DNA of 64,000 nucleotides from Gracilinanus agilis (Eukaryota). Below are positions 40,295-55,939 of this stretch, piece after piece. Every line of letters begins with the position of its first letter. Position 1 is the stretch's first letter. The stretch covers positions 202,380,740 to 202,444,739 of the forward strand of contig NC_058130.1 in NCBI RefSeq assembly GCF_016433145.1. Reading direction: 5' to 3'. The translations under genes were made by a program, and so were the position numbers. The notes under the pieces were generated by a model. It was given only the letters and a program-made list of their open reading frames with translations, was not told the DNA's origin and did no database searches.

Positions 40295-43200
40295 ATGGAG
40301 ACAGGCCCGGCGCCCTTGGTGGCCCCCCCACGCCGCCATGGTGCCTCAGTGGCCCCCTCTCCGCCACCTCGGGGCTCCCGGACTGGGCCTGTGCTCGTGG
40401 TGGCCCCAGGGCCCCCAGTGACCACGGCCACCTCCTCTCCAGTCACTCTGGTGGCCCCTGGAGAGGCCCGCCCGGCCTGGATGGCAGCTGGCCCCAGGCC
40501 CCCTCTTGGCATCCCCGGGAGCCGGCCACCACCTCCGCCAGCCTCTGCAGGATCACCAGGGCCAGCGGGGGGAACAGGGGCCGGTGGCAGCACGGTGGTG
40601 GTACTGACTCTGGAATCTGTGGCTTCAGTCTCAGCTTCTGGGCAGGATCCTGACCCCAACCCCACTAGAGAGGGGAGGACAGACAGCCTTGAAACCACTG
40701 GAATCCCAAGGACAGAGCCAGGGCCAGGGTCAGCCTCTGAACCTCATGGCAGGCTGGTGGCACCAGGAATGGTGGCAGCAGTAGGAACAGCTTTACCCAT
40801 CAGTGCTGTGACCCCTGGGATGGTGATAGACTCTGCAGTAGCCAAGCCAGAAGCAGCAATAGCAACATCAGCACACTTGGAGACAGCCCTTGTAGGTGAC
40901 TCTCTAGTCACCAGCTCAATGGGCCTGACTGCATCGGAGATGGCATCGAGATTGGATCCGGGCACTGGATTAGCTGACTTGGCCCTTTCAGGAGCACCTG
41001 TGTCTGTGACAGCAGAGAGTTCAACCCTTGTGCCTGTTGTAACATCTTCTGGTGCAGTGACAGCCAAACCGCCTGTTGCGCCCAAACCAGGAATGGTGGT
41101 GGCTTCAGGAACAACTGGACCAGCTACTATTATAACAGCAGGACTGACAACAGATGGGCTAGTTGCTACAGGGACAGCAGCAATGGGTGAAACCACTGTA
41201 GCAGTGGCAGTGGCAGGTCCAGCTGTTGCAGTGCCAGTGGGGACAAGAACAGAGTCTCCTGTGGTCTGTGAGACTCCAGTAGCCATGGTAACTGTGACCC
41301 CAGCCCCAGAGCCAACTGAAGGTTCCCAGGACCTGGGCTCCATGTCTAGTTTAGGTCCTGGAATCCAAGGACCTCGGGGGCAGGCCCCAGATAGCCTGAG
41401 CTACCTGGACTCTGTGAGCCTCATGTCAGGGACCTTAGAGTCTTTGGCAGATGATGTGAGCTCCATGGGCTCAGACTCAGAGATCAACGGGCTTGCTCTT
41501 CGAAAGACAGACAAGTATGGATTCCTGGGGGGCAGCCAGTACTCTGGAAGCCTGTGAGTACTGGGGACCCCATGGGAACACTCTTATTATGGGGAGAAAG
41601 AAGCCTTTAGAGAGGGTGATATTTATAAATCTTGTCAGCTCCATGGTTCCTCCAACTTGGGATTCAGACTTGGACAGTATTGAGAGTTGCTTTGAATTAA
41701 ACTTCAAGAAGTTTAATTCAATCATACTGACCTTCCCTCAGAGGTGTTTTATGCAGTGTGATGTGGGAGAAAGAACACTGGGCCTCTAAATTGGATCATT
41801 TGAGTTCTAGTTTCTTCTCTTCCCCTACTTCCCATGTTGACCTTGGGCAAGTCATTCAGTAGTCTGTTTTGTTTCGTCTGTAAAAAGAGGGGGGTTAGAT
41901 TAGATCTTTAAGTACTCTTCCAGTTCTGAGTCTGTGATTCTCTGATGTTAAAACCTGGCCATAGGTGGGAGACTAGGTCTTATTGGCTTAAGGGTAATAT
42001 AGCAGCTGATTAGGGGGTAGTATTTAAAAATCTAGTTGGATTGCAGACTGTGATGGAGATCTGTAGCCTTTTTCAGGCAAAGAAACCGCAATGCCTCTGT
42101 ATGATTTAGATGATAAGGGTGACTTTAACCTGGAGGGTGGTACCAGGATATATGGAGCCAATTCTGTGTTCTTTACTTCTCTCCTGCCTTGATGTAGGAG
42201 GTCACAAAAAGAATAAAGGGGTAGAGGTAGAGTATGATTTAGGGGGAGGTGAACATTGAACAAAACTTAACTGAATGAGGGAGCAAAGACTTCCAGGTCT
42301 TCACAGGAGAAGGGAGTATGGGTGCCCCTTCTCCATTTCCTCATCTCAGGCCCTTCCCTCTTTCCTAGTTCCCTGCCTCCTATGGTCTGAGTCACTCCCT
42401 CCTGAGGTGTGGGGTGTGACTGCTGTGACTCCTTCCTTCCCTCTATCAGGATCCTGGTTATCCTTATTCCCCTTCCTCCTACACAATGGAATGAACCCAG
42501 ATGCCTCCATTTCCTTGGACTAGGTCCTCAGGGACATAGTGGTCCAGGTTTAAAAATAGGAAGTTGTGGAATCTGAGGAGATTTGAAAGGAAAAGTATGA
42601 AGGCTCCTTGAAGAGAGGATAGAGAAACTTATGGTTGGAGTGACATCAGTTGGACTTTTCCTTTCTCCCCCAGGGAAAGCTCTGTCCCCGTTGATGTGGC
42701 CCGTCAGCGGGAGCTAAAGTGGCTGGACATGTTCAGTAACTGGGATAAGTGGTTATCTCGTCGCTTTCAGAAGGTACATGAAATGGGGAGAGCAGGGTTG
42801 AAGCTTAATATACCTTTTATCTGTGAGGACCTGCAACCTTCAGTTCTTTCCTTTTCTCTGACCCTTAACCTCTCCAGCAATTAGGAGGGTGGGAGAAAAG
42901 CAAAAACATCTCTAAGTCTTTAGGAGAAAGTTATGGGTAGGAATAAGATCAGCCTGGCACATTGGATAGTACATAGTGCTACATATTAAAGGTATGAAAA
43001 TGGCATATGCTTAATGTGTAACTATAAGGCACTAGTGCTTTTACTTTGTCTGAGATAAACTTAGGATCAGCCCTGCTTGGGATTGGTTAACTTGACCATA
43101 AGATGATCCCTGAGGGGAATCATTGGTCTCTTCTAGTGTAGAATGGACCATAAGGGCTGTTCTCAGCTGAGTAAAAGTCTAACTTCACATGTCATCTTTC

Positions 43201-46200
43201 CCTCTCATATCTCTTTTCTGCCAGGTGAAGCTGCGATGCCGAAAGGGCATCCCCTCATCCCTTAGAGCCAAAGCCTGGCAGTTTTTGTCCAACAGCAAGG
43301 AGCTCCTAGATCAAAATCCTGGTAAATTTGAGGTATGGATGGCAGCTGGTTCTCAGGAGAATATATTAGAATGCCAGGTCTGCATTGTCTTCTGGGCAAG
43401 TCAAGGCTCTCATTTGTGGTTTAGAAGAAGGGTTTAGAGAGCTTTCTCTTGAATGTAGAATGGGGGGAAACTGCTACAGAGAAATATAACTTGTACATTT
43501 TATCAAAGGAGCTGGAGCGGGCCCCAGGAGACCCTAAGTGGCTGGATGTGATTGAGAAGGATTTGCATCGACAATTCCCCTTTCATGAGATGTTTGCTGC
43601 TCGAGGGGGTCATGGGTAAGATTTAGGAGTGGGTTGACAGTAGACAATCAAAAAAAGTCTTGGCCAGAGTTTCATTCAGCAACAATTTTGATACAGCTTA
43701 AGAGCCCTTTTACTCAGTGCTTTACAGAATACAAAGATGGAAATATAATTGGTTTCTGCACCTAGATTAGTAGTGGGAAAAGATAAATAAAATAAAAAGT
43801 AGAGTATGGTTAAGTGCTATAAGAGAGATACAGAATGCTATGGAACTTCTGGCCAGAAAATTAGGAAAAGAATCTTAGAAGAGCATTCAAATTGGACTCT
43901 GAACAATGGGCACAATTCTGATTGATAAAATGAGAGAGAGAGAGCATTCTCAGTAGTAGGAATAGTATAAGCAGAAGAAGAGAGAAAAATTAAGGACCTC
44001 TCTCTTGATTTACTGTAAGTAGTTTAGTTTGGTTGAAGTATCTGAGGAGAGGGAAGGATATAAAACTGGAAAGATAGGGCTTGAGAACCAGGAAGAGGAA
44101 TTTGGACTTTATTTTGTGGTCAATAGGGAGAAGTCATTGAAGATTTTTGAGTAGGTGGGTGGGTATAACACAATCATAGCTATGCTTTAGGAAGATTAAT
44201 CTGGTAGCTGTGGATATACAGCACAGATTTGAGCTGAGGAGAAGGGGGGCTCGTGTGGCATGTGCTGTAGGAAGGTTCTTAGGATAAGTTTGGGGCAGTC
44301 TGAAACAGATGTTCTCAGAACCATTGAATCTTAGTTACCATGGTAACATTCCTCCCTTTCCCATGCCTGCAGGCAGCAAGACCTGTATCGGATCTTGAAA
44401 GCCTACACCATCTATCGGCCTGATGAGGGTTACTGCCAGGCCCAGGCCCCTGTGGCAGCTGTGCTGCTCATGCATATGCCTGCTGAGGTCAGAGTGCCGG
44501 GCTGAGGGACCTAGGGTTGGACAGTGGGAGGAACTGGAGCCTCTGACAATACTTTGCATGTATTAAGAGAGCTGACTGGACCACTCCAGAAGCTTTTTGG
44601 GTTGGGCAGATGGGGAGTGACACTGGGCTATCAGTGAAATGGGGGTGGGGAGAAGTACCCTGTTCTTCAAATTCTCTTTTTCCTCTCCAGCAAGCTTTCT
44701 GGTGCTTGGTACAGATATGTGACAAATACCTTCCTGGCTACTATAGTGCGGGGCTGGTGAGTAATACTTGGGCTTCTCACAGGGGATGGAGGGGCAGTAG
44801 ATAGAGAGCCAGGCCTGGAGACAGGAGGAGATCTTGGAGTCAAATGTGGCCTCAGATACTTCCTTTCTGTGTGACCCTGGACAAATCATTTAACCTCTTT
44901 TGCCAAGCCCTTACTGTTCTTCTCCCTTGGAACTAAGACAGAAGGTAAGGGTTTAAAAAAAAAAATAGAGGGGCAGCTGGGTAGCTCAGTGTATTGAGAG
45001 GCCTAGAGACGGGAGGTCCTAGGTTCAAATCTGGCCTCAGACACTTCCCAGCTGTGTGACTCTGGGCAAGTCACTTCACCCCCATTGCCCACCCTTCCCA
45101 CTATTCTACCAAGGAGCCAATACACAGAAATTAAGGGTTTAAAAATGTAAAAAAATAAAAAAAAGAAGAGAAGAGAAAGGGTGTGGACCTAAGGCAGGCT
45201 GGAAGGGAGCAGCTGGGATGAGGAAGGTTACTGAATCTTTTTGCCTTTAGCTTGTGAACATTTCATCTCCATCTCTTTGCTCACTATTCAGGAAGCCATC
45301 CAGCTGGACGGGGAGATCTTCTTTGCTCTTCTTCGGCGGGCTTCCCCTCTAGCACACCGGCATCTTCGGCGTCAGCGCATTGATCCTGTTCTCTACATGA
45401 CTGAGTGGTTCATGTGCATCTTTGCCCGAACTCTGCCCTGGGCCTCAGTTCTCCGGGTTTGGGACATGTTCTTCTGTGAAGGTACCCATGATTAGGGGAC
45501 TTTTCCTAGACCTGTGGTCCTCACTAACGTTTATTCTCATGCATTGTCAACACTGACTCCCTTTACTAAGTTGGTTTCAAGAGCGTTTTCTACTTTTATC
45601 ACTGTAAAGGTTCTAAAAGAGGGTGAGAGTGAACCTGGAGACTGGCATGCATCATATATATTGAGTAAATTTTTGTTAATTTCCCCTTTTTCCCATTAGT
45701 CAGCTAATATTAGTACCTCTTCTTGCATAGTCTTGATCATTTCATAGATGCCCCTGACCCAGCTATCCCTGAGAGAACTACACAATATTCTTGGGTGCCA
45801 GCACATAGTTAGGCCATTCTTAGAATGCAATGGTTTCTGTAGCAGTTGCTAGTGAACTCTCATCATCAGTCTTTCTGATGACCCAGAACAGAAATCCTCA
45901 AAACAAAATTTATTATTTGGTGAAGGTAGGAAAGGGAGAGAGTCATTTAGACCTGGATATTTTTTAAAAGAGTAAGAGCTCTGGTATCAGCTAGGTCTTC
46001 TATTCTCTATTCTCTAGTGACTTCTGACACCTAATTTTCCCTCAGGAGTCAAGATCATCTTCCGAGTGGCTCTGGTGCTTCTTCGGCATACGCTGGGCTC
46101 CGTAGAGAAGCTTCGGTCCTGCCAGGGAATGTATGAGACCATGGAGCAACTGAGGAACTTACCTCAACAATGCATGCAGGAAGAGTTCCTTGTGAATGAA

Positions 46201-46936
46201 GTAGGTGCCTCCTTCCTGTCCTGCCCAGCATCTCTGTATTTTCTGGAGCTGGCCAAGTCTGGCTGTCAATGCTGCCTCTGCTGTTCCTGGGATTCACATG
46301 CCTCATTCCCCACTTTTCTCATTTCAGGTAACAAACCTCCCTGTGACAGAGGCCCTGATAGAGCGTGAAAATGCAGCACAGCTAAAGAAGTGGAGAGAGA
46401 CCCGAGGGGAACTTCAGTACAGACCATCCAGAAGGCTCCATGGCTCAAGGGCAATCCATGAGGAGCGCAGGCGACAGCAGCCCCCTCTGGGCCCATCTTC
46501 CAGTCTCCTCAGCCTTCCAGGCCTCAAAAGTCGTACCTCCAGAGGTGGAGGTTCTTCTTCTCCACCCCTCCCTATTCGAAGAGCCAGTGCTGGCCCTGCT
46601 CCAGGCCCTGTGGTCACAGCTGAAGGGCTACACCCCTCCCTGCCCTCACCAACTGGAAACAGCACACCTCTGGGACAGGTAAAGGAGACCAAGCGACAGG
46701 AGAAGGAGCGGCAGAAGCAGGAGAAGGAGCTTCAGAAGCAGGAGAAGGAGAGGCAGAAGCAGGAGAAGGAGAGGCAAAAGCAAGAGAAGGAGCGAGAAAA
46801 GGAGAGACAGAAACAGGAGAAGAAGGCCCAGGGGCGGAAGATGTCCCTTCGGCGGAAGGCAGACGGTTCTCCACCCCCACAAGATGGAGGGGATGGGACC
46901 TCGGCAGCTGGGGCACGACAGGATGCCTACTTCTGA
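40295..46936 (+). CDS. TBC1D10B: TBC1 domain family member 10B (EPI64B, Rab GAP), 9 coding exons, 902 aa
   Basis: Exons 40295-41553, 42674-42773, 43225-43332, 43509-43615, 44373-44487, 44691-44756, 45292-45481, 46046-46200, 46328-46936. All GT-AG, 2709 nt. Kozak gccATGG; starts [16 protein letters not shown]; TBC motifs [10 protein letters not shown] and GYCQAQ; QEKER repeats; C-terminal DAYF. Confidence 0.97.
44781..45165 (+). mobile_element. Head-to-tail pair of SINEs in TBC1D10B intron 6
   Basis: An older copy (about 44781-44968) is followed at its A tail by a younger copy (44969-45165). Confidence 0.85.
46693..46825 (+). repeat. Coding 21-nt (7-aa) QKQEKER repeat in the TBC1D10B tail
   Basis: [45 protein letters not shown]; a charged coiled-coil or single-alpha-helix-like tract. 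Confidence 0.9.
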
Positions 46937-47602
46937 CCTTCTATCCCATCCATGCTGGGTCTGGTAGGGACACTGGCTTCCCTCCTCCATGTTGAACTTC
47001 ATCACCTGTCCTCTGCACTTCCTTGACCTCCCAGGCCTATGGAGCCAGTTACAGGTCTCCTCTCATTCTATTTGGTCAGTGATATTCTCCCTTAGAGAAG
47101 GCTGTTTTTCTCCCCACCTTGGTATAAACAGCCATGTCTCAACAGAGCAAAAGGAACTAGTGCTATTCCCCAGATCCATCGTCGGGCTTGGTTCCACTGT
47201 GGAGCTGGCCCAGTATTTTCCTCAGTTGTTGCTGGACTCTGTCCCTAAGCCAACCCTATCTAGGGGGTTTGAAACCCCAATAAGCATTTCATGGGATGAT
47301 GTGGAGTGAGCCCTGAGCTTACCCCCACCCTTTTTCCAGTCTACTCAACCAGTGTTCTTCCTTTCCTGACTCCATTAAGTTTCTCCTTTCACCTTTCCCC
47401 TCTCTTGCTGATCTAACCCTTTCATACCTTCTTCAGCATGAGTGGACTTTTAAAGATGGGCCTTGGCTGTTTCTAAATTTTTACTCTTGGTGGCTTAGCC
47501 TCCCAATTCCACAAGGAGAAAGCTGGGTGAGCCTCTTCTTCCCTCAAGCCTTAACCGTCCCCCTACATCTTCCCTCTGTGCCAGACAGAGAGGCAGAAGG
47601 GC

Positions 47603-47607
<5 letters not shown>

Positions 47608-47644
<37 letters not shown>

Positions 47645-47663
47645 TACATATATATATATATAT
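47608..47663. repeat. (TA)n/(CATA)n microsatellite in the TBC1D10B 3' UTR
   Basis: tatatata..cacatatacatacatatata. Confidence 0.9.
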
Positions 47664-48354
47664 CTGATGTCTCTGCATTGTAATTATGTACACAGGATCC
47701 TGGGGGGGTTCATTCTCTACTTCTCCTCTTGCTCTGTTCACTGGTTTATTTAAGAGGAGTTGACCTGCAGCAGGAAGGGTCCCTCAGCAAGTCTGCTTGC
47801 CTTTCAGTACTGTTTCCAGCTGCTTTTCTTCATATATTTTCTACCACATCTTCCGGCTCATCCTTCTAGGGCCCCTTCTAATTTTTGCCATAATCTCTTC
47901 CCCATTCTGCCTTCTTTTGTTCCTTGAACTTCTTGCTCCCCTTTGAGTTGGGTGACCTCACTGTTCTCTAAGGGGTTGGGGGGGCCCTCATGTTTACATT
48001 CTCTTTCAGCCCCCTCACTTCCCCTACTGCATTGCCCCCACCCCCAACTGTACAGAGCTTTGTGGAACCGGGAAAGAACAAATCTAATGTCCTGCCCTAC
48101 ACTTGACTCTTGCCTGTTTATTTTCTTTTTTAAGGTGGTTGGGGCACAGGGATGGAATGAATAAGTGTACAATGGGCAATGACCAGATGAATGCTTAGCC
48201 TTGGGACTTTTATTCAAATATGCTTCCAGGCTGTGAGCCAGTTTGATTTTAGTAGTTCCCAAAACGTTTAGTATATCAGCCCTAGACATCCCTTAGAGTG
48301 CTCTAGACTTGCCATATCTTTCTTTCCTCCAGGCCCAGAATTTGGGCTTCACCC

Positions 48355-48936
48355 TCACCCAAACTCCATGAGGTCGGCTTGCTTCTTGGTTGCCCTAGAC
48401 CTGGCAAGTGCCTGGATCTCTTCCCCAAAGCGCTGGTGCAACTCCTGGAAGCTAGAGGGGGCTGGAGAGCGGGGGAGATCCAGAAATCGGTCTTCCTGCG
48501 GTGGTGCCTGGGGCTCCACTCCAGCTTCTTGGCACACCCTTTGGTACTGCTCCTGTAAGGGCTGCAGGAGCTCCCACAGCTGACTCCATCCTGCCCTAAC
48601 TAGAGCCCTAAGCCAGCCATCGAGCTCAGCCTTGCTCTCCGCTGCCAGTTTGTAGCACCGACCACCTTCCCTCGCAGAGGCTAGGATGGCAAAGGCATAG
48701 GGCTCGGTGGTACTGTCTCGAGGCTCCACCTGGCAGTTGTCCAACAAGATGAGGCCCAGAGGAGTCCGATCCCTTCGTTTCTCCAGGTAGTACAGGAGAT
48801 TACCCCGGAGGATGAACCAGCGGCGTTGGTAGCTGGGATTGCGAGTCCCTTTCTTTAGCAAGATACCCTCCCGATCTGGGGCCCGGGCTCCTGTTCCTCG
48901 AAGGTAGCTGAGCACAGGCTTCCGGTGCAGTTTCAT
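48355..48936 (-). CDS. Sesquipedalian/PHETA (IPIP27, FAM109)-family PH-domain endocytic adaptor, 193 aa; putative third paralogue
   Basis: PH domain (REGILLKKG..SYQRRWFILRGNLLYY..PLGLILLDNC..YKLAAES..LDGWLRAL), a short helical segment, and the F&H motif FQELHQRFGEEI (48415-48450), similar to recalled PHETA1 FARLHECYGQEI. Kozak ctaccATG; acceptor at 48948; donor CAG|GTAGGC at 49323; AATAAA (-) at 48209-48214. Confidence 0.9.
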   Translation of the reverse strand: MKLHRKPVLSYLRGTGARAPDREGILLKKGTRNPSYQRRWFILRGNLLYYLEKRRDRTPLGLILLDNCQVEPRDSTTEPYAFAILASAREGGRCYKLAAESKAELDGWLRALVRAGWSQLWELLQPLQEQYQRVCQEAGVEPQAPPQEDRFLDLPRSPAPSSFQELHQRFGEEIQALARSRATKKQADLMEFG

Positions 48937-49323
48937 GGTAGCTAAACCTGGGAAGGGACCATGAATTCAAGAAAGGGGTGGGAAAAGGAATCATTGAACT
49001 GGTAGCGCAGGGGCAAGGTTTGAGACAGTACAAATTGGGCACCTACTGTGCATTGGATACCTAGGGGAAGAAGGCTGTCCTTGCCTTCGTGGAAATTATA
49101 TGCTAACACTAGACAGATCACTTTTGACATATTAGTAATTCCCATCACGTCCCTGAGCTGTTCTTGGTGCTCTCAGAACTTGAGGTGCGAGTGGAAACCT
49201 GAGCCCTGGCGGGACACCTCAGTGGGGTGCAAAGGGCACTGAACAGTTGGGGTTCCAGCCTCAAGGGGTGCTGCTTCAGAGGAAGCTGGTGCTGGGGTAC
49301 CCGGGTTTCCACCTAGTGCCTAC

Positions 49324-50100
49324 CTGAGGCAGGGGGCGGGAGGGCCCCTCCGGGTTGTGACGGTGGGAACAGGTGCGGGGGCGGGGCAGTCGTTCCTCTA
49401 TCTCTTGGTGGCTCCCCACCCCAGGAACCAGGAAAATCCTCCAGGGGGTGGGCCTAATGTCGCGCGTAGAGCCAAAAGAGACTTCCTCCTGGGTCCTAGA
49501 GGGCGCTGGGTTTTCAGGAGAAACGGGGTGGGGGTAGGGAAATCATGAGAGAATTAACGGATGTGTTCCTACCCTAAGCGAAGCAGAAAGTGGGGATAGC
49601 ATTGGGGGGAGGGTGCTTCTCACAGAAGAAAGGACGGAACCCTTGAGACTCACGTGTTCTGGTTCAGTCTTAGGCAAGGACTATTGGGGTTGAAATTTTC
49701 TCCTCGGCCTCCCCCTTTGTCCCCTGTCCCATTCCGTTGTTTGTGCTCCTCCAAGGTACACAAGACTTCCGCCCTCAACCCTTCTCGTCCAGCCCAATAA
49801 TGCCTTGGGGGATAGAAGCTACTTCCGACCAGTTTTTCGTAACTTCCGCCCTTACTAGCTTTCCTTTCACCCACGGGGAATGACGTAATTCCTGTGGTTT
49901 CTAGGTTCCCATTTCCGCCCTCTTTCTCAACAAAGTCTTCTAAAGCTAGTGAAGCCACTTCCGGGGTGTTTACATAGCCTTCCAGAGAATCTCTTCCGGT
50001 TAGCTCCGGAGTGGTGCCCTGGATGTAGCCGGGGCGATAGCGTTCTTTTCCCCCGCCCCCTCCTCCCCTCCCCTCCTCTCCCCTCCCCGGAGCCCCAGGT
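49324..50100. promoter_or_regulatory. Bidirectional CpG promoter with non-coding first exons of the PHETA-like gene (-) and CD2BP2 (+)
   Basis: ETS/GABP-type TTCCG cores at 49765, 49821, 49842, 49911, 49957 and 49992; TGACGTAA at 49881; CACGTG at 49651. CD2BP2 exon-1 donor CAG|GTGAGG at 50099; minus-strand donor at 49323. Confidence 0.8.
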
Positions 50101-50811
50101 GAGGGCGCGCACGCGGAGTGAGCCCCGAATCCCGCGGGGTTCCATCTACTCCCTGCTCATTTACATATTAAGAGGAGGAAGGAGGGGTGGGGGCTTGTAA
50201 GGGATGGACCGGGAGTTGTGGCGGGTTTAGAGTAGGGGTATATTGGGGTCTGGGGCTCCCTACAATGGGCCGCTGAGCCCCTTAAGGGCCCTCGGAGTTG
50301 GGAGTAGGGTTGGTAGGGTCTCGGGTGTGCGCGGGTAAGGGGAATCCCGGCAACGCCGTCCTTTGTCACTCCTAGTGTAAGGGGGTTCGGGGATAGAGAA
50401 CATCCATCCTCTCGTAGAGGGTGCAGGCCCCAGATGCTGAGTGGCCCCCCCACCCCGAAACTACAGCTGTGGGGCCTTGCTAACAATCCGTAGGCTTTTT
50501 CCTCCCATCTCTCCCCAAGTCAGACAAATTCCAGCCCCGCCCCCTTCCCCCCTTTAATCTAGGGTCATGGGAGCTTCCAGGAGACTCGGATGCAAGCTCT
50601 TACCCGATTCCCTCCCTTTCCTTGTTGACCACAGAGACTGAAACATCCCAATCTGAGGACAATAGTATACCTTCCCCTTAAGAAGTGGGAAAGTGAGTTC
50701 TGAACCCCCAACCCCTATAAGTGCATTTCGCTGTGCTAGGGCTTACTAACCCTGCGGCTCCATTTTGCTCAGCTCCTGGGAAGGACTGGATCCTGTCCTG
50801 CAAATCCCACC

Positions 50812-53244
50812 ATGCCCAAGCGAAGAGTGACCTTCCAGGATGTGGGAGTCGAAGAGGATGGAGAGGATCTCCCCAAAAAGAAGGTGAGGGAGTCAAGATA
50901 CCTGAGTTTCCAGGATATGGAATGGAGAGAATCTCCTCCCAAAGAAGGGGAAGAGTCTGAATGCCTGAATTCCCAGTTTGAGTGGGGTTGTTAGGGACTG
51001 AACTGAAAGACTTGTAAAATTTGTATCTACTGCATCCAATCATGTTTCTGCCTGTAGTTGGTGGATCCTGTGACGGGAGCAGGGGGCCCTGGGAGCCGGT
51101 TCAAAGGCAAACATTCTTTGGACAGTGATGAAGAAGATGATGATGAGGATGGTTCTAGCAAGTATGTCATCCTAGCCTCGGAAGATGTGGAAGGTGAGGC
51201 CATGGGGCCTTCTTCTCCCTTACAGCCTCCCTAGCCTGAGGCTAGATTCTTGAAAGTGGAATGCAGATTTATGCCAGAGGATATTTTTCCAAAAATGTTT
51301 ATTAAGTGTTGTGCCTAGTATTGTGTCAGGGTGTAGTAGGGGAAGGCAGGGGGAAAAATACAGTATCCTCTACCTTCAGAAAGCTCACAGCCAGATAGCT
51401 TAAGATACAGAAGCACCTATAATAATGTTAAAATGTGCATTAAAGAGATGCAAAATAGCACTGTGTGAGGTTCAAGGAGGACGGTCATTACCGACTAGAA
51501 TATCATAGAGAAAAATGTTCTTTGAATTGGAATTTAAAGGATGTCTAGGAATTCATCAGGCCAAGAGGGAAGTTTAGAACACCTGAATGAAAACTCAGAG
51601 AACAGTTGATTGGCAACAAGTAATATGTATGGCAGACAGGGTAGTAGGATAATGAAAGACCGGAGAGCCCTGAATGCTTTAGGCAAAGGAATTTGGACTT
51701 TACTCAGTAGTCAAAAGAAGAAAATAAAGATTTTTCAGCAGAGGAATGACCAGGCAATAGGATTTAGATATTGCTTCCCTTTCTCTTGTACAATTCTGGG
51801 TATCTGTTCATCCAGGTCAGGAGGCGGCCACACTCCCAAGTGAGGGTGGTGTTCGTATCACACCCTTCAACCTGCAGGAGGAAATGGAAGAGGGCCACTT
51901 TGATTCTGATGGCAACTACTTTCTGCACCGTGATGCTCAGATTCGGGACAGCTGGCTGGACAACATTGACTGGGTTAGGGTCTCCAGGCCTGGAGACTTG
52001 GGTCTTGGTGGGGAGTGATGTATTTCATTTGTGAAATGAGATAGAGACCCAAGACTGAGGGGTAGGGGTGCCTTGATGAGATATGAGGCTAGGGACCAGG
52101 ATACCTGGAGGGAGAAGGCCAAAAGGTATAAGAAAGAAACCTATCTTCTCTCATCTCAGGTGAAGATTCGGGAGCGCCCTCCAGGCAAGCCTCCTGCCTC
52201 AGACTCAGAGGAAGACAGCCCTGGCCAGACACCACTGGGCCCTCAAGCCCTCCTAGAGGGTCTCTTGGAGATGTTGTTGCCAGGGGAGACAGTTGCTGGG
52301 GCACTTAGGCGGCTAGGTGCTCGGAAGGGTGGTGAAGGACCCCAGCGACCAAATTCCCCACAGCGATTAGACCGGCTTTCAGGATTGGCTGACCAGATGG
52401 TTGCCCGAGGCAACCATGGAGTATACCAGGAGACCAGGGAACGGCTAGCTGTGAGGCTGAAAGCACTAGGGGGCCGCACACCAGGGCTCTCGGACACAGC
52501 ACCTCGTCCTGTCCTGGACATGTTTGCTGAAGAGGTTGGGGAGGGGGAGCTGGAGACCCCAACCCCAGCCCAAGGAGGAGGTAAGGGTTGGAGACCTGGA
52601 GCTATTGGGTCCTTTCAGTGACGTGGAGACTCAGAAAGATATTGATCCTAAAAGGATCCCAGAAGGAGAGTGGGAGCCTATTTGGAGAGACTGGGGATCA
52701 GGTCAGAGTATGAGGGGCAGAATTGAATGGGGAAAGTATGGGGTCTGTGTATGAATGGGATTTGAGCATATATGGGGGATGAAGTGTGATGGGATAATAA
52801 GGGGAGACAGAAACAAGTTATATGTGTAGGAGGATAGCTGGTGGGGTGGTGGGGTGGAGTGACCTCAGGTTCAGGGGACAGGGAAACGGAGCTGAGAAAG
52901 CCTTTTCTGGTTGCCTTTCTAGAAGCAGCTGCCATGGGGGATGGCTTGGCTGATGTGATGTGGGAATATAAATGGGAAAACACAAGTGATGCAGAGCTCT
53001 ATGGGCCCTTCACCAGTGCCCAGATGCAGGTGAGGATTCCCTCTCCAAATCCTACCTACCTCTCCCTTCCTTGGATTATATATATTGCCCCACCCCTCAT
53101 CCTCCCTCACTTTCTTCTTGCCTTTCTCTCTAGGCTTGGGCAGATGATGGCTATTTCCCAGATGGTGTTTATTGCCGGAAGTTGGATCCCCCAGAAGGCC
53201 AGTTCTACAACTCCAAACGTATAGATTTCAGTCTCTATGTCTGA
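50812..53244 (+). CDS. CD2BP2: CD2 antigen cytoplasmic tail-binding protein 2 (U5-52K, GYF domain), 6 coding exons, 334 aa
   Basis: Exons 50812-50883, 51058-51193, 51816-51973, 52160-52580, 52923-53029, 53134-53244. All GT-AG, 1005 nt. Starts MPKRRVTF; GYF domain [37 protein letters not shown] at 53415-53420. Confidence 0.97.
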
Positions 53245-55939
53245 ATCCCGTTTTTATTTTTGGGGGGCTGGAGTAGGCAGTACCAGGGCAAGCACTTTCC
53301 AGGTTATGTTTTCAGGAGGAGACCTTGGGCTTATCCTGGGGCTTGTATGGACCTTAGCAGGGGTGAGGGGGGTGGAATGGTATTGGTCTGGGGAGGGTGG
53401 GCATTTCCTGTCTCAATAAAAATCTCTAGTTGTGTAAAAGGGGTGTCCAGTGTGGGGAGTGGGGAGGAGGGGAGGGAAGTGAGTGGGCACAGTTGCACAA
53501 AGAGCCCGAATTCCTCTGCTCTACCTTAGAGAAGTACTGTGCTTCAAGCTGGTGAGAACAGCCCTCTATTCCTGAGTCACAATGTCCTGGTCTGTGCTGG
53601 GTTTTCCCTCTCCTCTTTCCTCCTCTCTGCTTCCCCTCTCCCCCAGATCAGGCCTCCAATGAGATGGATGAAATGGTCCTTCCTGGAGCTGGCCATCCAG
53701 AAAGATCCCTGTGCTCCTGACTTTGCTACTGGCCAGTGTATGCCCATAAGCATAATGTGACTTCCTCTTCTCTGGGCCTCAGTGTTCACATCTGTGAACC
53801 TGGATTTGTACCGTGTTGAAGGAGCTTGAGTCAGGATACTTGGGTTTGAATCGCAAACTGCCTGGCTATAGACCTGCCTAATTTTAATCTCTTCTTTGAG
53901 CCCCACTTTCCTTATCATGAAATGGGGATAATCATACAACCTACCTCACAGGGTTGTTGTGGGGAATGCACTTTGTAAACCTTAAAAGTGCTTGAGAAAT
54001 GTGACTTATTGTAACACTTTTAAGATGCTTTGACAAGGGATTCCATGACTAGGGTTTTGTTTTGTTTTTTTCATTCTTCTTACCCTCATTTAATGACTCA
54101 GATTTGGAAGATATGGGGCAGGTAAAGGGAGAAAGTGGGAGAGAATTACCCTAGAACATTGAATCTGGAAGAGGCCTCTGTAACCTCAACTAGTCTAATT
54201 CCCTCATTTTATAGCTAGGAAAAAAGGCCCAGAGCATGGAAAGGACTTACCCAAGGTTACTCTTACAAGTCCCTGGCAGAGTTTGTCCTGATGCTTTTCT
54301 AAGTCTCTCTTGTTTTCCTTTCTCCCTTGGTCGGAAAATGACAAAAGAATGCCAAGACCCTTCCTTTAGGTGCAGGAGCCTCCTGTTTTCTGGAGGTACT
54401 CGGGTGCAGACTCCTGTCTCCCTCCTCCTTTCACTTCTAACATTGATGAAGCCTCAATTACTTCCTCAGTTAGGTCAGCTAGCCAACAGGTGGTACTCAA
54501 TTCAACCAGCATTAAGTGAAGCAGTCCTTGCCTTAAAAGAGTTTACATTCTTCTGGGAGATATAATATTACACAAATAAATATAATGTCTGCACAGTGTA
54601 ACTGGGAGAATCTGAAGGGCCTGGAGTTGGCATCTGAGCTCAACCTTCAAGAGAATTAAGAGGTTCTATGAATGGAAGGTGAGGAGCAAAGATGTCCTAA
54701 GCATGGATGGGCGAAATGGTATATATTTGGAGCAAATAGGCTAATTAGGTGAGAACAGTGTGGAAGAGGAATTAATGCCAAATAAGTATGGAAATGTAGT
54801 CTGGGCCATATTGTAAAAGGCTTTAAATGTCTAATGGAGGAGTTTTTGCTTTATTTAATAAAGCAGTAGAGAGCCACTGGAGCATTTCAGACAGGAATGA
54901 ATAACATGGCCTGAGCCATGTGAGATTAATTTTGTAGCAAGGTGAGAGATGAATCAGTAAGGGGAGAGACCAGAAGCAGGGAGACCAATGGGGAGGCTAT
55001 GGCAGTATCCATCTAAGGGGATGAGGGGGGCAGCTAGGTGACAGTGGATAGAGTACCCAATCTGGAGACAGGAGGTCTTGGGTTCAAATGTGATCTCACA
55101 TACTTCTGTGTGACCCTATGCAAGTCACTTAACCTCAATTTACCTTGTTCTTACTGCTTTTTTGCCTTGGTACCGATACTTAGTATTGATTCTAAGACAC
55201 AAAGTAAGGGTTTAAAAAAATTTAAAGAAAGGGCTGAGGACCTGAATTAGGCGTATGAATCAGTATGGGAAACTGACAATACTGAAGTACTTCATTGGAT
55301 ATTGCAGGGGAGAAAAAAGTATATAATGATTTCAAAGTTGATCACCTGGGTGATCACATGAATGGATACTATTATCACTACTACCTGTATTCCTCCTCCT
55401 CAAAAAAAAAAAAACAAAAAAAACCCAAAACAAAAACCTGGGGGGGGGGGTTCAGTTCCTTTGCCTGAAATCTCTCCATTGGCAATATTTTCCTCTAGGT
55501 TAACCATTCCACAGTTTTAGGACCTTGTTGCAATAGTACTGTTCCCCTTGACTTACACACACACAAACACGTATATACACACACACAAAGTTGTTATAAG
55601 GGTTCTTTACCTTAGAGTCCCCAGGTTCAGACTTTTTAGTTCAGCACAGTGTTCTGATGGGGAAAAAAGTAGAGTAGTAGGGATGGATAATGTTAGAGTT
55701 GAGCACATTGCTAGATAGGCCAAGCCAGGGTGTATGAGGCTGTAAAACACCTATCTTACCTTAGCAGCCCTAGGCTTCTCCTTTGGAATCATGCCTTTAG
55801 CCACAGGGGTTTTGCTATTATATCTATTTTGCTGATCAATGAACCCCAGTTAAACAAGCCCAGCTGGTGTTAGGCAAAGGAGTTACAAAGATAAAAATGA
55901 ACCAATCCTTGCTCTCAGGAAACTAAAAAAAAAAAAAGG

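Follow-up and report, generated by a model that had tools for sequence, protein, structure and literature searches.

A probable marsupial orthologue of an ancient third PHETA/sesquipedalian paralogue between TBC1D10B and CD2BP2 in Gracilinanus agilis

Introduction

OCRL, the Lowe syndrome and Dent-2 protein, works via adaptors that carry an F&H motif, and because the field is defined by human and mouse studies, it counts two PHETA proteins: PHETA1 (Ses1, IPIP27A, FAM109A) and PHETA2 (Ses2, IPIP27B, FAM109B). Both have one coding exon. It is through their F&H motif that they attach to the ASH-RhoGAP-like domain of OCRL and INPP5B; within this 13-mer, the phenylalanine at position 2 and the histidine at position 6 are indispensable for OCRL binding, and position 9 is defined, by conservation among Ses1/2 proteins, as a residue that is bulky and hydrophobic (PMC6743453). 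The substitution F224A abolishes both binding and endosomal targeting of IPIP27A, and IPIP27A/B dimerise, most likely via a coiled coil (PMC3046058). In zebrafish, two homologues only have been described: pheta1 is syntenic with SH2B3, while pheta2 (zgc:153733, chr3) is more divergent, shows 'no obvious synteny' to either human PHETA gene, lacks the PPPxPPRR motif, retains the F&H motif and OCRL-binding site, and has been knocked out (PMC7272357). Here we describe a gene of this family in a 64,000-nucleotide stretch of the genome of the marsupial Gracilinanus agilis (NCBI RefSeq assembly GCF_016433145.1, contig NC_058130.1, forward-strand positions 202,380,740 to 202,444,739), hereafter the window, where it lies on the minus strand between TBC1D10B and CD2BP2.

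With good confidence, this gene can be regarded as a functional marsupial orthologue of an ancient third PHETA/sesquipedalian (Ses, IPIP27, FAM109) paralogue, referred to as clade A. The same explanation, to which we give equal confidence, dates clade A to before sharks and bony vertebrates diverged, with the gene staying next to TBC1D10B/MYLPF and undergoing repeated losses, one of them in a hominid. The structure, transcription, selective constraint, orthology and phylogenetic position of the gene are established below, and its predicted roles in OCRL binding, membrane targeting and clathrin binding are considered from its sequence.

Results

Gene structure and transcription

The open reading frame (ORF) listing and translation placed the coding sequence at 48355..48936 (minus strand), with 193 codons and a stop codon in a single exon. 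A single-sequence search revealed that an exact match to the 193-amino acid product is already present in public protein collections (record P0001). The start codon lies in the context ACCATGA, with A at -3, and the spliced leader contains an in-frame stop 48 codons upstream of the start and two short upstream ORFs. The 5' untranslated region (UTR) is interrupted by a GT-AG intron of 376 nt (48948..49323, minus strand), whose boundaries read CAG/GTAGGC at 49323 and CCCAG/G at 48948.

Contigs of public sequencing runs were mapped on positions 46500-52400 of the window. The small transcriptome-sized runs X20 and X21, from one organism, each gave a contig of ~1.05 kb that was 100% identical to the window and covered the whole coding sequence. 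Both contigs jump from 48945 to 49322, and the cut fits equally well 2 nt further on, at 48947/49324, giving GT..AG on the minus strand; the same joint between exons 1 and 2 was found in a third run, X19. The contigs also define the minimum extent of the 5'-UTR exon 1 (49324..49642, minus strand). The 3' UTR (47725..48354, minus strand) was delimited by signal scan and contig ends. It carries three AATAAA signals, at 48214, 48122 and 47750 (140, 232 and 604 nt past the stop codon), and contigs end shortly downstream of each of them, at 48207, 48112 and 47725, respectively. The k-mer depth in X20 and X21 was 58-85 for the PHETA-family gene versus 2-3 for CD2BP2, depth being a poor measure of expression. 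A preliminary description, made from the letters alone, had proposed the reading frame, the favourable start context, the intron with its 48947/49324 junction and the poly(A) signals, and all of these were confirmed, the intron to the nucleotide. The CpG promoter that it also proposed holds in part, as an island is present, but it is weak (58% G+C and a CpG observed/expected ratio of 0.55 over 49300-50500).

Phylogenetic position

Relatives were collected in several ways. A single-sequence search returned 44 relatives, nearly all of the named ones being 'sesquipedalian-1-like' at NCBI, and stopped short of PHETA1/2. A profile search and a search that started from frog PHETA2 gave named PHETA1 and PHETA2 proteins from sharks to birds, invertebrate homologues, and more 'sesquipedalian-1-like' proteins in fishes, salamanders, caecilians and sharks. 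An exhaustive profile search returned mostly unnamed and multi-PH proteins and became informative after name look-up, which contributed platypus PHETA2, a 'sesquipedalian-1-like' protein of Anolis and second genes of Latimeria, Polypterus, Lepisosteus, Carcharodon and Xyrauchen. The tree was inferred with IQ-TREE (LG+C20+F+G4, posterior mean site frequency model) from 79 proteins and 260 columns, and rooted on one starfish and three crustacean proteins; a Mandrillus PHETA1 fragment was kept in the motif table and left out of the tree.

The rooted tree divided the vertebrate family (support 100/98) into two sister clades. Clade B (100/99) holds all PHETA1 and PHETA2 proteins. Clade A (98/96) holds the window protein, all tetrapod proteins encoded between CD2BP2 and TBC1D10B, salamander and caecilian proteins, shark genes, and a single gene from each of coelacanth, bichir, paddlefish, gar, bowfin and teleosts. 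Among the marsupials, the window protein is sister to the koala, Sminthopsis and Macrotis proteins (99/90), as would be expected of an American opossum. Approximately unbiased (AU) tests rejected the grouping of mammalian clade A with amniote PHETA1 (log-likelihood difference 52, p = 1.5e-4) as well as with amniote PHETA2 (difference 44, p = 1e-3). In accordance with these results, the platypus has a PHETA2 (P0196) alongside its clade-A gene (P0006), and the turtle Carettochelys has PHETA1, PHETA2 and a clade-A gene. The window gene thus falls outside the PHETA1 orthologue group, given also its lack of PPPxPPRR and its CD2BP2/TBC1D10B neighbours, and outside the PHETA2 group, of which platypus and Carettochelys own separate members. 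Its PH domain, F&H motif and common descent with PHETA1/2 and invertebrate sesquipedalian proteins place it within the PHETA/sesquipedalian family.

Among the amphibian sequences, caecilian proteins named 'sesquipedalian-2' grouped with amniote PHETA1 and not with the PHETA2 of frogs, salamanders and amniotes (88/87), and no frog or salamander PHETA1 was present among the hit lists. Automatic PHETA1/2 names may therefore be unreliable in amphibians.

Genomic context and distribution

The neighbouring genes were identified by colinearity with the annotated loci of koala, platypus and golden jackal. Against the koala locus, the window aligns colinearly along the full interval at ~79%; platypus and jackal match exon by exon. 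These matches identify the 3' exons of a convergent RabGAP-TBC gene, the TBC1D10B orthologue (42660..46939, plus strand), and the exons of a divergent GYF-domain gene, the CD2BP2 orthologue (50806..53250, plus strand), the called genes of the platypus and jackal loci carrying PF02213. The flanks given in the preliminary description were therefore correct. Among the fetched loci, the order GYF gene, PH gene, RabGAP-TBC gene was found in koala, Sminthopsis, Macrotis, platypus, golden jackal, the turtle Carettochelys and bonobo. In all of these except bonobo, which is described below, the GYF-domain gene (334-368 amino acids) lies divergently upstream and the RabGAP-TBC gene convergently downstream; in the frog Rana, a TBC gene lies downstream of the PHETA-family gene. 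This shared arrangement indicates that the slot has been occupied since at least the tetrapod ancestor.

The window protein is 88% identical to the koala protein, 83% to that of Sminthopsis, 74% to that of Macrotis, 62-63% to those of platypus and echidna, 45% to that of turtle and about 40% to those of frogs. Eutherian relatives were found in Sorex, Hyaena, sea lions, Sciurus, Hippopotamus, Talpa, Canis, Dipodomys, Condylura, Moschus, Castor, Dasypus, Tupaia and Marmota. Intact orthologues are predicted in monotremes, in many eutherians (carnivores, artiodactyls, squirrels, beaver, kangaroo rat, shrew, moles, armadillo and tree shrew), and in turtles, Anolis and amphibians. The preliminary description had the gene retained in marsupials, which is far too narrow a range, since the clade spans monotremes, eutherians, turtles, Anolis, amphibians, coelacanth, ray-finned fishes and sharks.

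In fishes, the NCBI models of Salmo trutta (P0090) and Notolabrus (P0119) fuse the clade-A gene with mylpf under the name 'myosin regulatory light chain 2 isoform X1'; the Salmo trutta model covers both the PH gene and an EF-hand gene. The fusion is an annotation artefact, and it exposes the adjacency of the two genes. As we take MYLPF to be the next gene past TBC1D10B in human 16p11.2, the fish clade-A genes probably belong to the same paralogon as the window gene. The 16p11.2, 12q24, 22q and 7q22 regions presumably share SH2B, ATXN2, MYL, CUX and TBC1D10 paralogues, in which case clade A would be an ohnolog of the two rounds of whole-genome duplication (2R). For the clade-A genes of Xyrauchen and Scyliorhinus, the 10-kb flanks contained no called neighbours, and tblastx against the window gave nothing beyond the PH exon.

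Selective constraint

Pairwise ratios of nonsynonymous to synonymous substitution (dN/dS) were calculated by the Nei-Gojobori method (NG86) with bootstrap 95% intervals. The ratio was 0.154 (0.08-0.27) between the window gene and koala, 0.20 (0.11-0.31) for Sminthopsis, 0.20 (0.14-0.29) for Macrotis, 0.24 (0.14-0.35) for Canis and 0.25 (0.15-0.375) for platypus. The gene is therefore under purifying selection of moderate strength, far from neutrality. Four marsupials belonging to distant orders, as well as both monotremes, have an intact ORF of 192-193 codons.

Protein domains and motifs

The protein starts with a PH domain at residues 22-115 (48592..48873, minus strand; PF00169, E = 1e-19), which was also recovered in the AlphaFold model. 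Among solved structures, the cytohesin/GRP1 PH domains come closest in sequence (E about 1e-13), and the window domain retains the basic K-K…R-R and the Y-Y residues that align with phosphoinositide-binding cytohesin PH domains. The model, built from 20 orthologues, had a mean predicted local distance difference test score (pLDDT) of 68.9 and a predicted template modelling score of 0.60. It showed a seven-stranded PH fold with a helix at 102-115 (pLDDT 76-91), a helix at 118-137, a disordered linker at ~138-162, a helix at 163-182 and a disordered tail. The post-PH helix (residues 118-137; 48526..48585, minus strand) occupies the position of the coiled coil of PHETA1/2, and the alignment of orthologues from frog to mammal showed little or no variation at L123, L124, L127, Q130 and Y131.

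The C-terminal helix carries the F&H motif, FQELHQRFGEEIQALA (residues 163-178; 48403..48450, minus strand). The 13-mer, SFQELHQRFGEEI, corresponds to residues 162-174 and holds the three key residues F2, H6 and F9 (F163, H167 and F170). Among 20 tetrapod orthologues, the invariant positions concentrate in the PH core and in the F&H helix, where F163, L166, H167, G171, E173, I174 and L177 do not vary, and the F&H residues are the most conserved from frog to mammal. The pattern F-x-x-L-H-x-x-(F/Y/L)-G-x-E-(I/V)-x-x-L is common to clade A, clade B and the invertebrate outgroups.

The protein ends in DLMEFG (48358..48375, minus strand), a clathrin-box-like sequence (L-hydrophobic-acidic-hydrophobic, with Asp at -1). 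When the motif L-(I/L/M/V)-(D/E)-(F/L/W/M/I) was scored in the last nine residues (background frequency 0.003), it was present in 29 of 36 non-eutherian clade-A proteins and in two of four invertebrate outgroups, and in none of the 34 clade-B (PHETA1/2) or the five eutherian clade-A proteins. The clade-A consensus, DLIDLG/DLIDFG, is kept from sharks and crustaceans to marsupials. It matches, as D-L-I-D-(L/F)-G, the non-conventional clathrin box LIDFG of Ack (PMC3038647) and the optimal LIDL with Asp at -1 of yeast Ent1/2/5 (PMC11543927), although the window has the variant DLMEFG, and the resemblance is that of a short linear motif and not homology. Some eutherian orthologues end in …CLL(M/T)SD in place of this tail.

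Comparison with PHETA1 and PHETA2 showed a common layout. As in PHETA1, the PH domain is N-terminal and a helix comes next, the C-terminal F&H motif has identical key residues (F, H, aromatic, G, E-I), the coding sequence is a single exon, and the origin is shared with invertebrate sesquipedalian homologues. The window protein is, however, shorter than PHETA1 (193 versus about 250-290 amino acids), its proline-rich linker is nearly absent, the PACSIN2-binding motif PPPxPPRR of PHETA1 is missing from the 193-amino acid product, and only the window protein has the DLMEFG tail. PHETA1 moreover lies beside SH2B3 (PMC7272357), whereas the window gene lies beside CD2BP2/TBC1D10B and belongs to a separate clade found throughout jawed vertebrates. 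PHETA2 has the same layout and likewise lacks the PACSIN2-binding motif (PMC7272357), but it too belongs to the separate clade B.

Loss and decay in eutherians

In bonobo, the slot between the GYF gene and an 810-amino acid gene is occupied by 'uncharacterized protein LOC134729283' (P0038; locus L009:9885-10528). The 810-amino acid gene has no recorded Pfam hit, and we infer from its length and position that it is TBC1D10B. By tblastn, the intact tree-shrew, jackal and beaver proteins were 70-85% identical to the bonobo sequence, which is otherwise well kept and in which the F&H motif is intact, but there is an in-frame stop at about codon 54 (…LFYLEH*TDH…) and a change of frame at about codon 59/60. 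The bonobo copy is thus a unitary pseudogene. The loss in the human lineage that had been proposed from the window sequence is supported to the extent that a hominid slot holds a disabled relic, bonobo being the hominid whose sequence was looked at.

Other eutherian models are also disrupted: colobine monkey models are cut at 149 amino acids, the models of a lemur, the fin whale and another cetacean (bmy_00759T0) have scrambled PH regions, and a lion model lacks part of the PH domain. These models suggest several independent decays, or else annotation errors. The family searches returned no mouse, rat, bird or crocodilian protein among the clade-A hits, which is weak evidence of absence.

From gene positions that we assume, the human long non-coding RNA (lncRNA) CD2BP2-DT, whose name denotes a divergent transcript, falls by its coordinates between CD2BP2 and TBC1D10B. 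It is a 1215-nt transcript of chr16:30355922-30357108 with weak coding potential (PMC12005790). Its likeness to the window gene lies in this presumed common slot, which in bonobo holds a disabled copy of the gene, and it differs in being handled in the literature as a non-coding RNA. Position and the bonobo relic together make it likely that CD2BP2-DT is a relic of the PHETA-family gene.

Transcript variants, flanking DNA and a second form of the gene

Run X21 contained an additional GT-AG splice from 49505 to 49654 (minus strand), by which 148 nt of the 5' leader are skipped; it suggests an alternative first exon beyond 49654, nearer to the start of CD2BP2. The gap from exon 1 to the first jackal-conserved block upstream of CD2BP2 (49643..50070, without assigned strand; block 49913-50070) is probably a divergent promoter shared with CD2BP2, judging from the jackal comparison, base composition and contigs. 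At 47675-48057, the k-mer depth in the transcriptome runs reached 155-190, two to three times that of the coding sequence, with ~10 at the 3' end of TBC1D10B; this may reflect repeat inflation, or a 3' fragment or isoform that is abundant in its own right. Past the stop codon, two blocks are 81-85% identical to platypus: 48057-48122, which holds the middle AATAAA, and 47638-47707, just past the distal poly(A) signal in the gap toward TBC1D10B, which is partly kept in jackal as well. RNA of a second organism (run X2) gave a contig of 116 nt that matches the start of the coding sequence (48835-48950) at 96.5% identity and ends near the splice acceptor, so that a related species apparently also expresses its own orthologue.

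Run X19 resembles whole-genome DNA of the same organism as X20 and X21, with a uniform depth of ~25 and coverage of intron and intergenic DNA. It contained a second form of the gene that differs at 7-11 bases and lacks 10 bp at 48464, a deletion that would shift the frame just ahead of the F&H motif. In the same run, 48192-48945 is joined to 49322-49380, as in the spliced transcript, and foreign sequence follows at 49380; in a bubble at 48192-48301 both forms were present at full depth (30 and 28). The second form is probably a young processed retrocopy, a pseudogene elsewhere in the genome, the alternative being a disabling allele.

Discussion

The locus encodes an intact PHETA/sesquipedalian gene with one coding exon, as the preliminary description had proposed from the ORF and domain layout, and two of its checks came out in favour of the gene: the protein is not nested within PHETA1 or PHETA2, and dN/dS is not near 1 (0.15-0.25, upper limits at most 0.375). 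By analogy with PHETA1/2, the PH domain and the helix following it would place the protein on endosomal membranes, where it would perhaps dimerise, and the C-terminal F&H helix (F163, H167, F170) would bind the 5-phosphatases OCRL and INPP5B at their ASH-RhoGAP-like domain. Since F2, H6 and F9 are present in the 13-mer and the extended pattern is common to clades A and B and to invertebrates, it is reasonably probable that the window protein acts as an OCRL/INPP5B adaptor. The ancestral tail, here DLMEFG, may additionally contact the terminal domain of clathrin; this second contact is a tentative proposal, which we hold to be rather less probable than its opposite.

That the protein is a functional PH adaptor with a main partner other than OCRL/INPP5B, its C-terminal helix serving in dimerisation or in the binding of another RhoGAP-like protein, is improbable. 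In its favour, the demonstrated binders of OCRL are limited to APPL1, PHETA1/2, Frabin and Dictyostelium proteins (PMC6743453), and the separation of clade A from PHETA1/2 predates the split of sharks and bony vertebrates. Nevertheless, F2, H6 and, at position 9, a bulky hydrophobic residue, together with the glycine and E-I/V, are kept in clade A, clade B and invertebrates, which is best explained by one conserved partner, and zebrafish Pheta2, probably a clade-A protein, is reported to keep the OCRL-binding site (PMC7272357).

It is much less probable that the locus is transcribed but no longer protein-coding in marsupials, either decaying or yielding an RNA from a promoter in common with CD2BP2. 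In bonobo the relic continues to be annotated as a gene, the corresponding human slot is reported to yield an lncRNA (PMC12005790), two upstream ORFs precede the start codon and the tail motif is degenerate in some marsupials. Such a history is hard to reconcile with an ORF that stays open in four marsupials and both monotremes, with upper confidence limits of dN/dS below 0.4 and with invariant F&H and PH core residues. Finally, a recent PHETA1 or PHETA2 retrocopy inserted between TBC1D10B and CD2BP2 in marsupials, as the single coding exon and the automatic name 'sesquipedalian-1-like', with its hint of closeness to PHETA1, might suggest, was rejected by synteny and by the AU tests on both nestings and can be dismissed, because the slot is also filled in monotremes, a eutherian carnivore and a turtle, with the frog copy next to TBC1D10B, the gene has its own spliced 5'-UTR intron, the protein falls outside PHETA1+PHETA2 in the tree, and a coding sequence without introns is a trait of the whole family.

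Several points weigh against a functional clade-A orthologue that acts as an OCRL adaptor. The tree includes no marsupial PHETA1 or full-length mammalian PHETA1, and platypus is the one mammal represented for PHETA2. A dN/dS of about 0.2 is moderate and not strong constraint. The AlphaFold model is of moderate quality only (mean pLDDT 68.9), its linker and tail being disordered, and OCRL binding by mammalian clade-A proteins is predicted from motif conservation. In two other marsupials, Sminthopsis and Macrotis, the tail has degenerated (the forms LTEFG and LMVFA occur), and eutherians lack the motif, which may therefore be dispensable.

The orthology of zebrafish pheta2 is affected by these results. 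It is very likely that this gene is the orthologue of the window gene and not of human PHETA2, because it is divergent and non-syntenic with human PHETA1 and PHETA2, because the teleosts sampled for both genes (Esox and Salmo) have one clade-B and one clade-A gene each, and because the protein of the cypriniform Xyrauchen falls in clade A; the placement was made with these relatives, the tree holding no zebrafish sequence. The fish clade-A proteins are, however, longer (250-290 amino acids) than the window protein. Regarding an adjacency of pheta2 to mylpfa, a literature search gave no mylpfa coordinates, and the text of PMC7272357 names no pheta2 neighbours.

The gene had been called probably uncharacterised. 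This is correct insofar as a literature search gave no match to PHETA3, FAM109C, IPIP27C or 'sesquipedalian-1-like' in searchable papers, but the protein is annotated under the last of these names and its probable zebrafish orthologue, as judged above, has been knocked out as pheta2 (PMC7272357). Clade A is a paralogue found throughout jawed vertebrates, already in public annotation and undescribed in print.

Taken together, clade A might represent an ancestral type of PHETA that couples OCRL/INPP5B, via the F&H motif, to clathrin, via DLID(L/F)G, the second function having been lost in PHETA1/2; it would be a 2R ohnolog in the MYLPF/TBC1D10B paralogon, with zebrafish 'pheta2' as its orthologue and CD2BP2-DT as its transcribed unitary pseudogene. 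As a joint proposal this is doubtful, with the odds leaning against all of its parts holding at once.

The gene itself is an ordinary family member, and its value lies in correcting the history of the family and not in a new mechanism. The main corollaries concern the orthology of zebrafish pheta2, the origin of CD2BP2-DT and a possible ancestral clathrin box. Doubt about the orthology of zebrafish pheta2 and human PHETA2 affects the reading of the zebrafish disease model: if the assignment to clade A is true, the zebrafish double mutant does not model the loss of human PHETA2. CD2BP2-DT, a human lncRNA now studied in cancer, probably began as the pseudogene of a protein-coding gene. A third, older lineage has been retained by many mammals (dog-like carnivores, ruminants, squirrels, shrews, marsupials and monotremes) and by most other jawed vertebrates. 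As this lineage was kept by many species and lost in a hominid, the redundancy of OCRL adaptors differs between species, and if the clade-A proteins do act in this way, the model species used for Lowe syndrome and for the kidney would differ in their number of OCRL adaptors.

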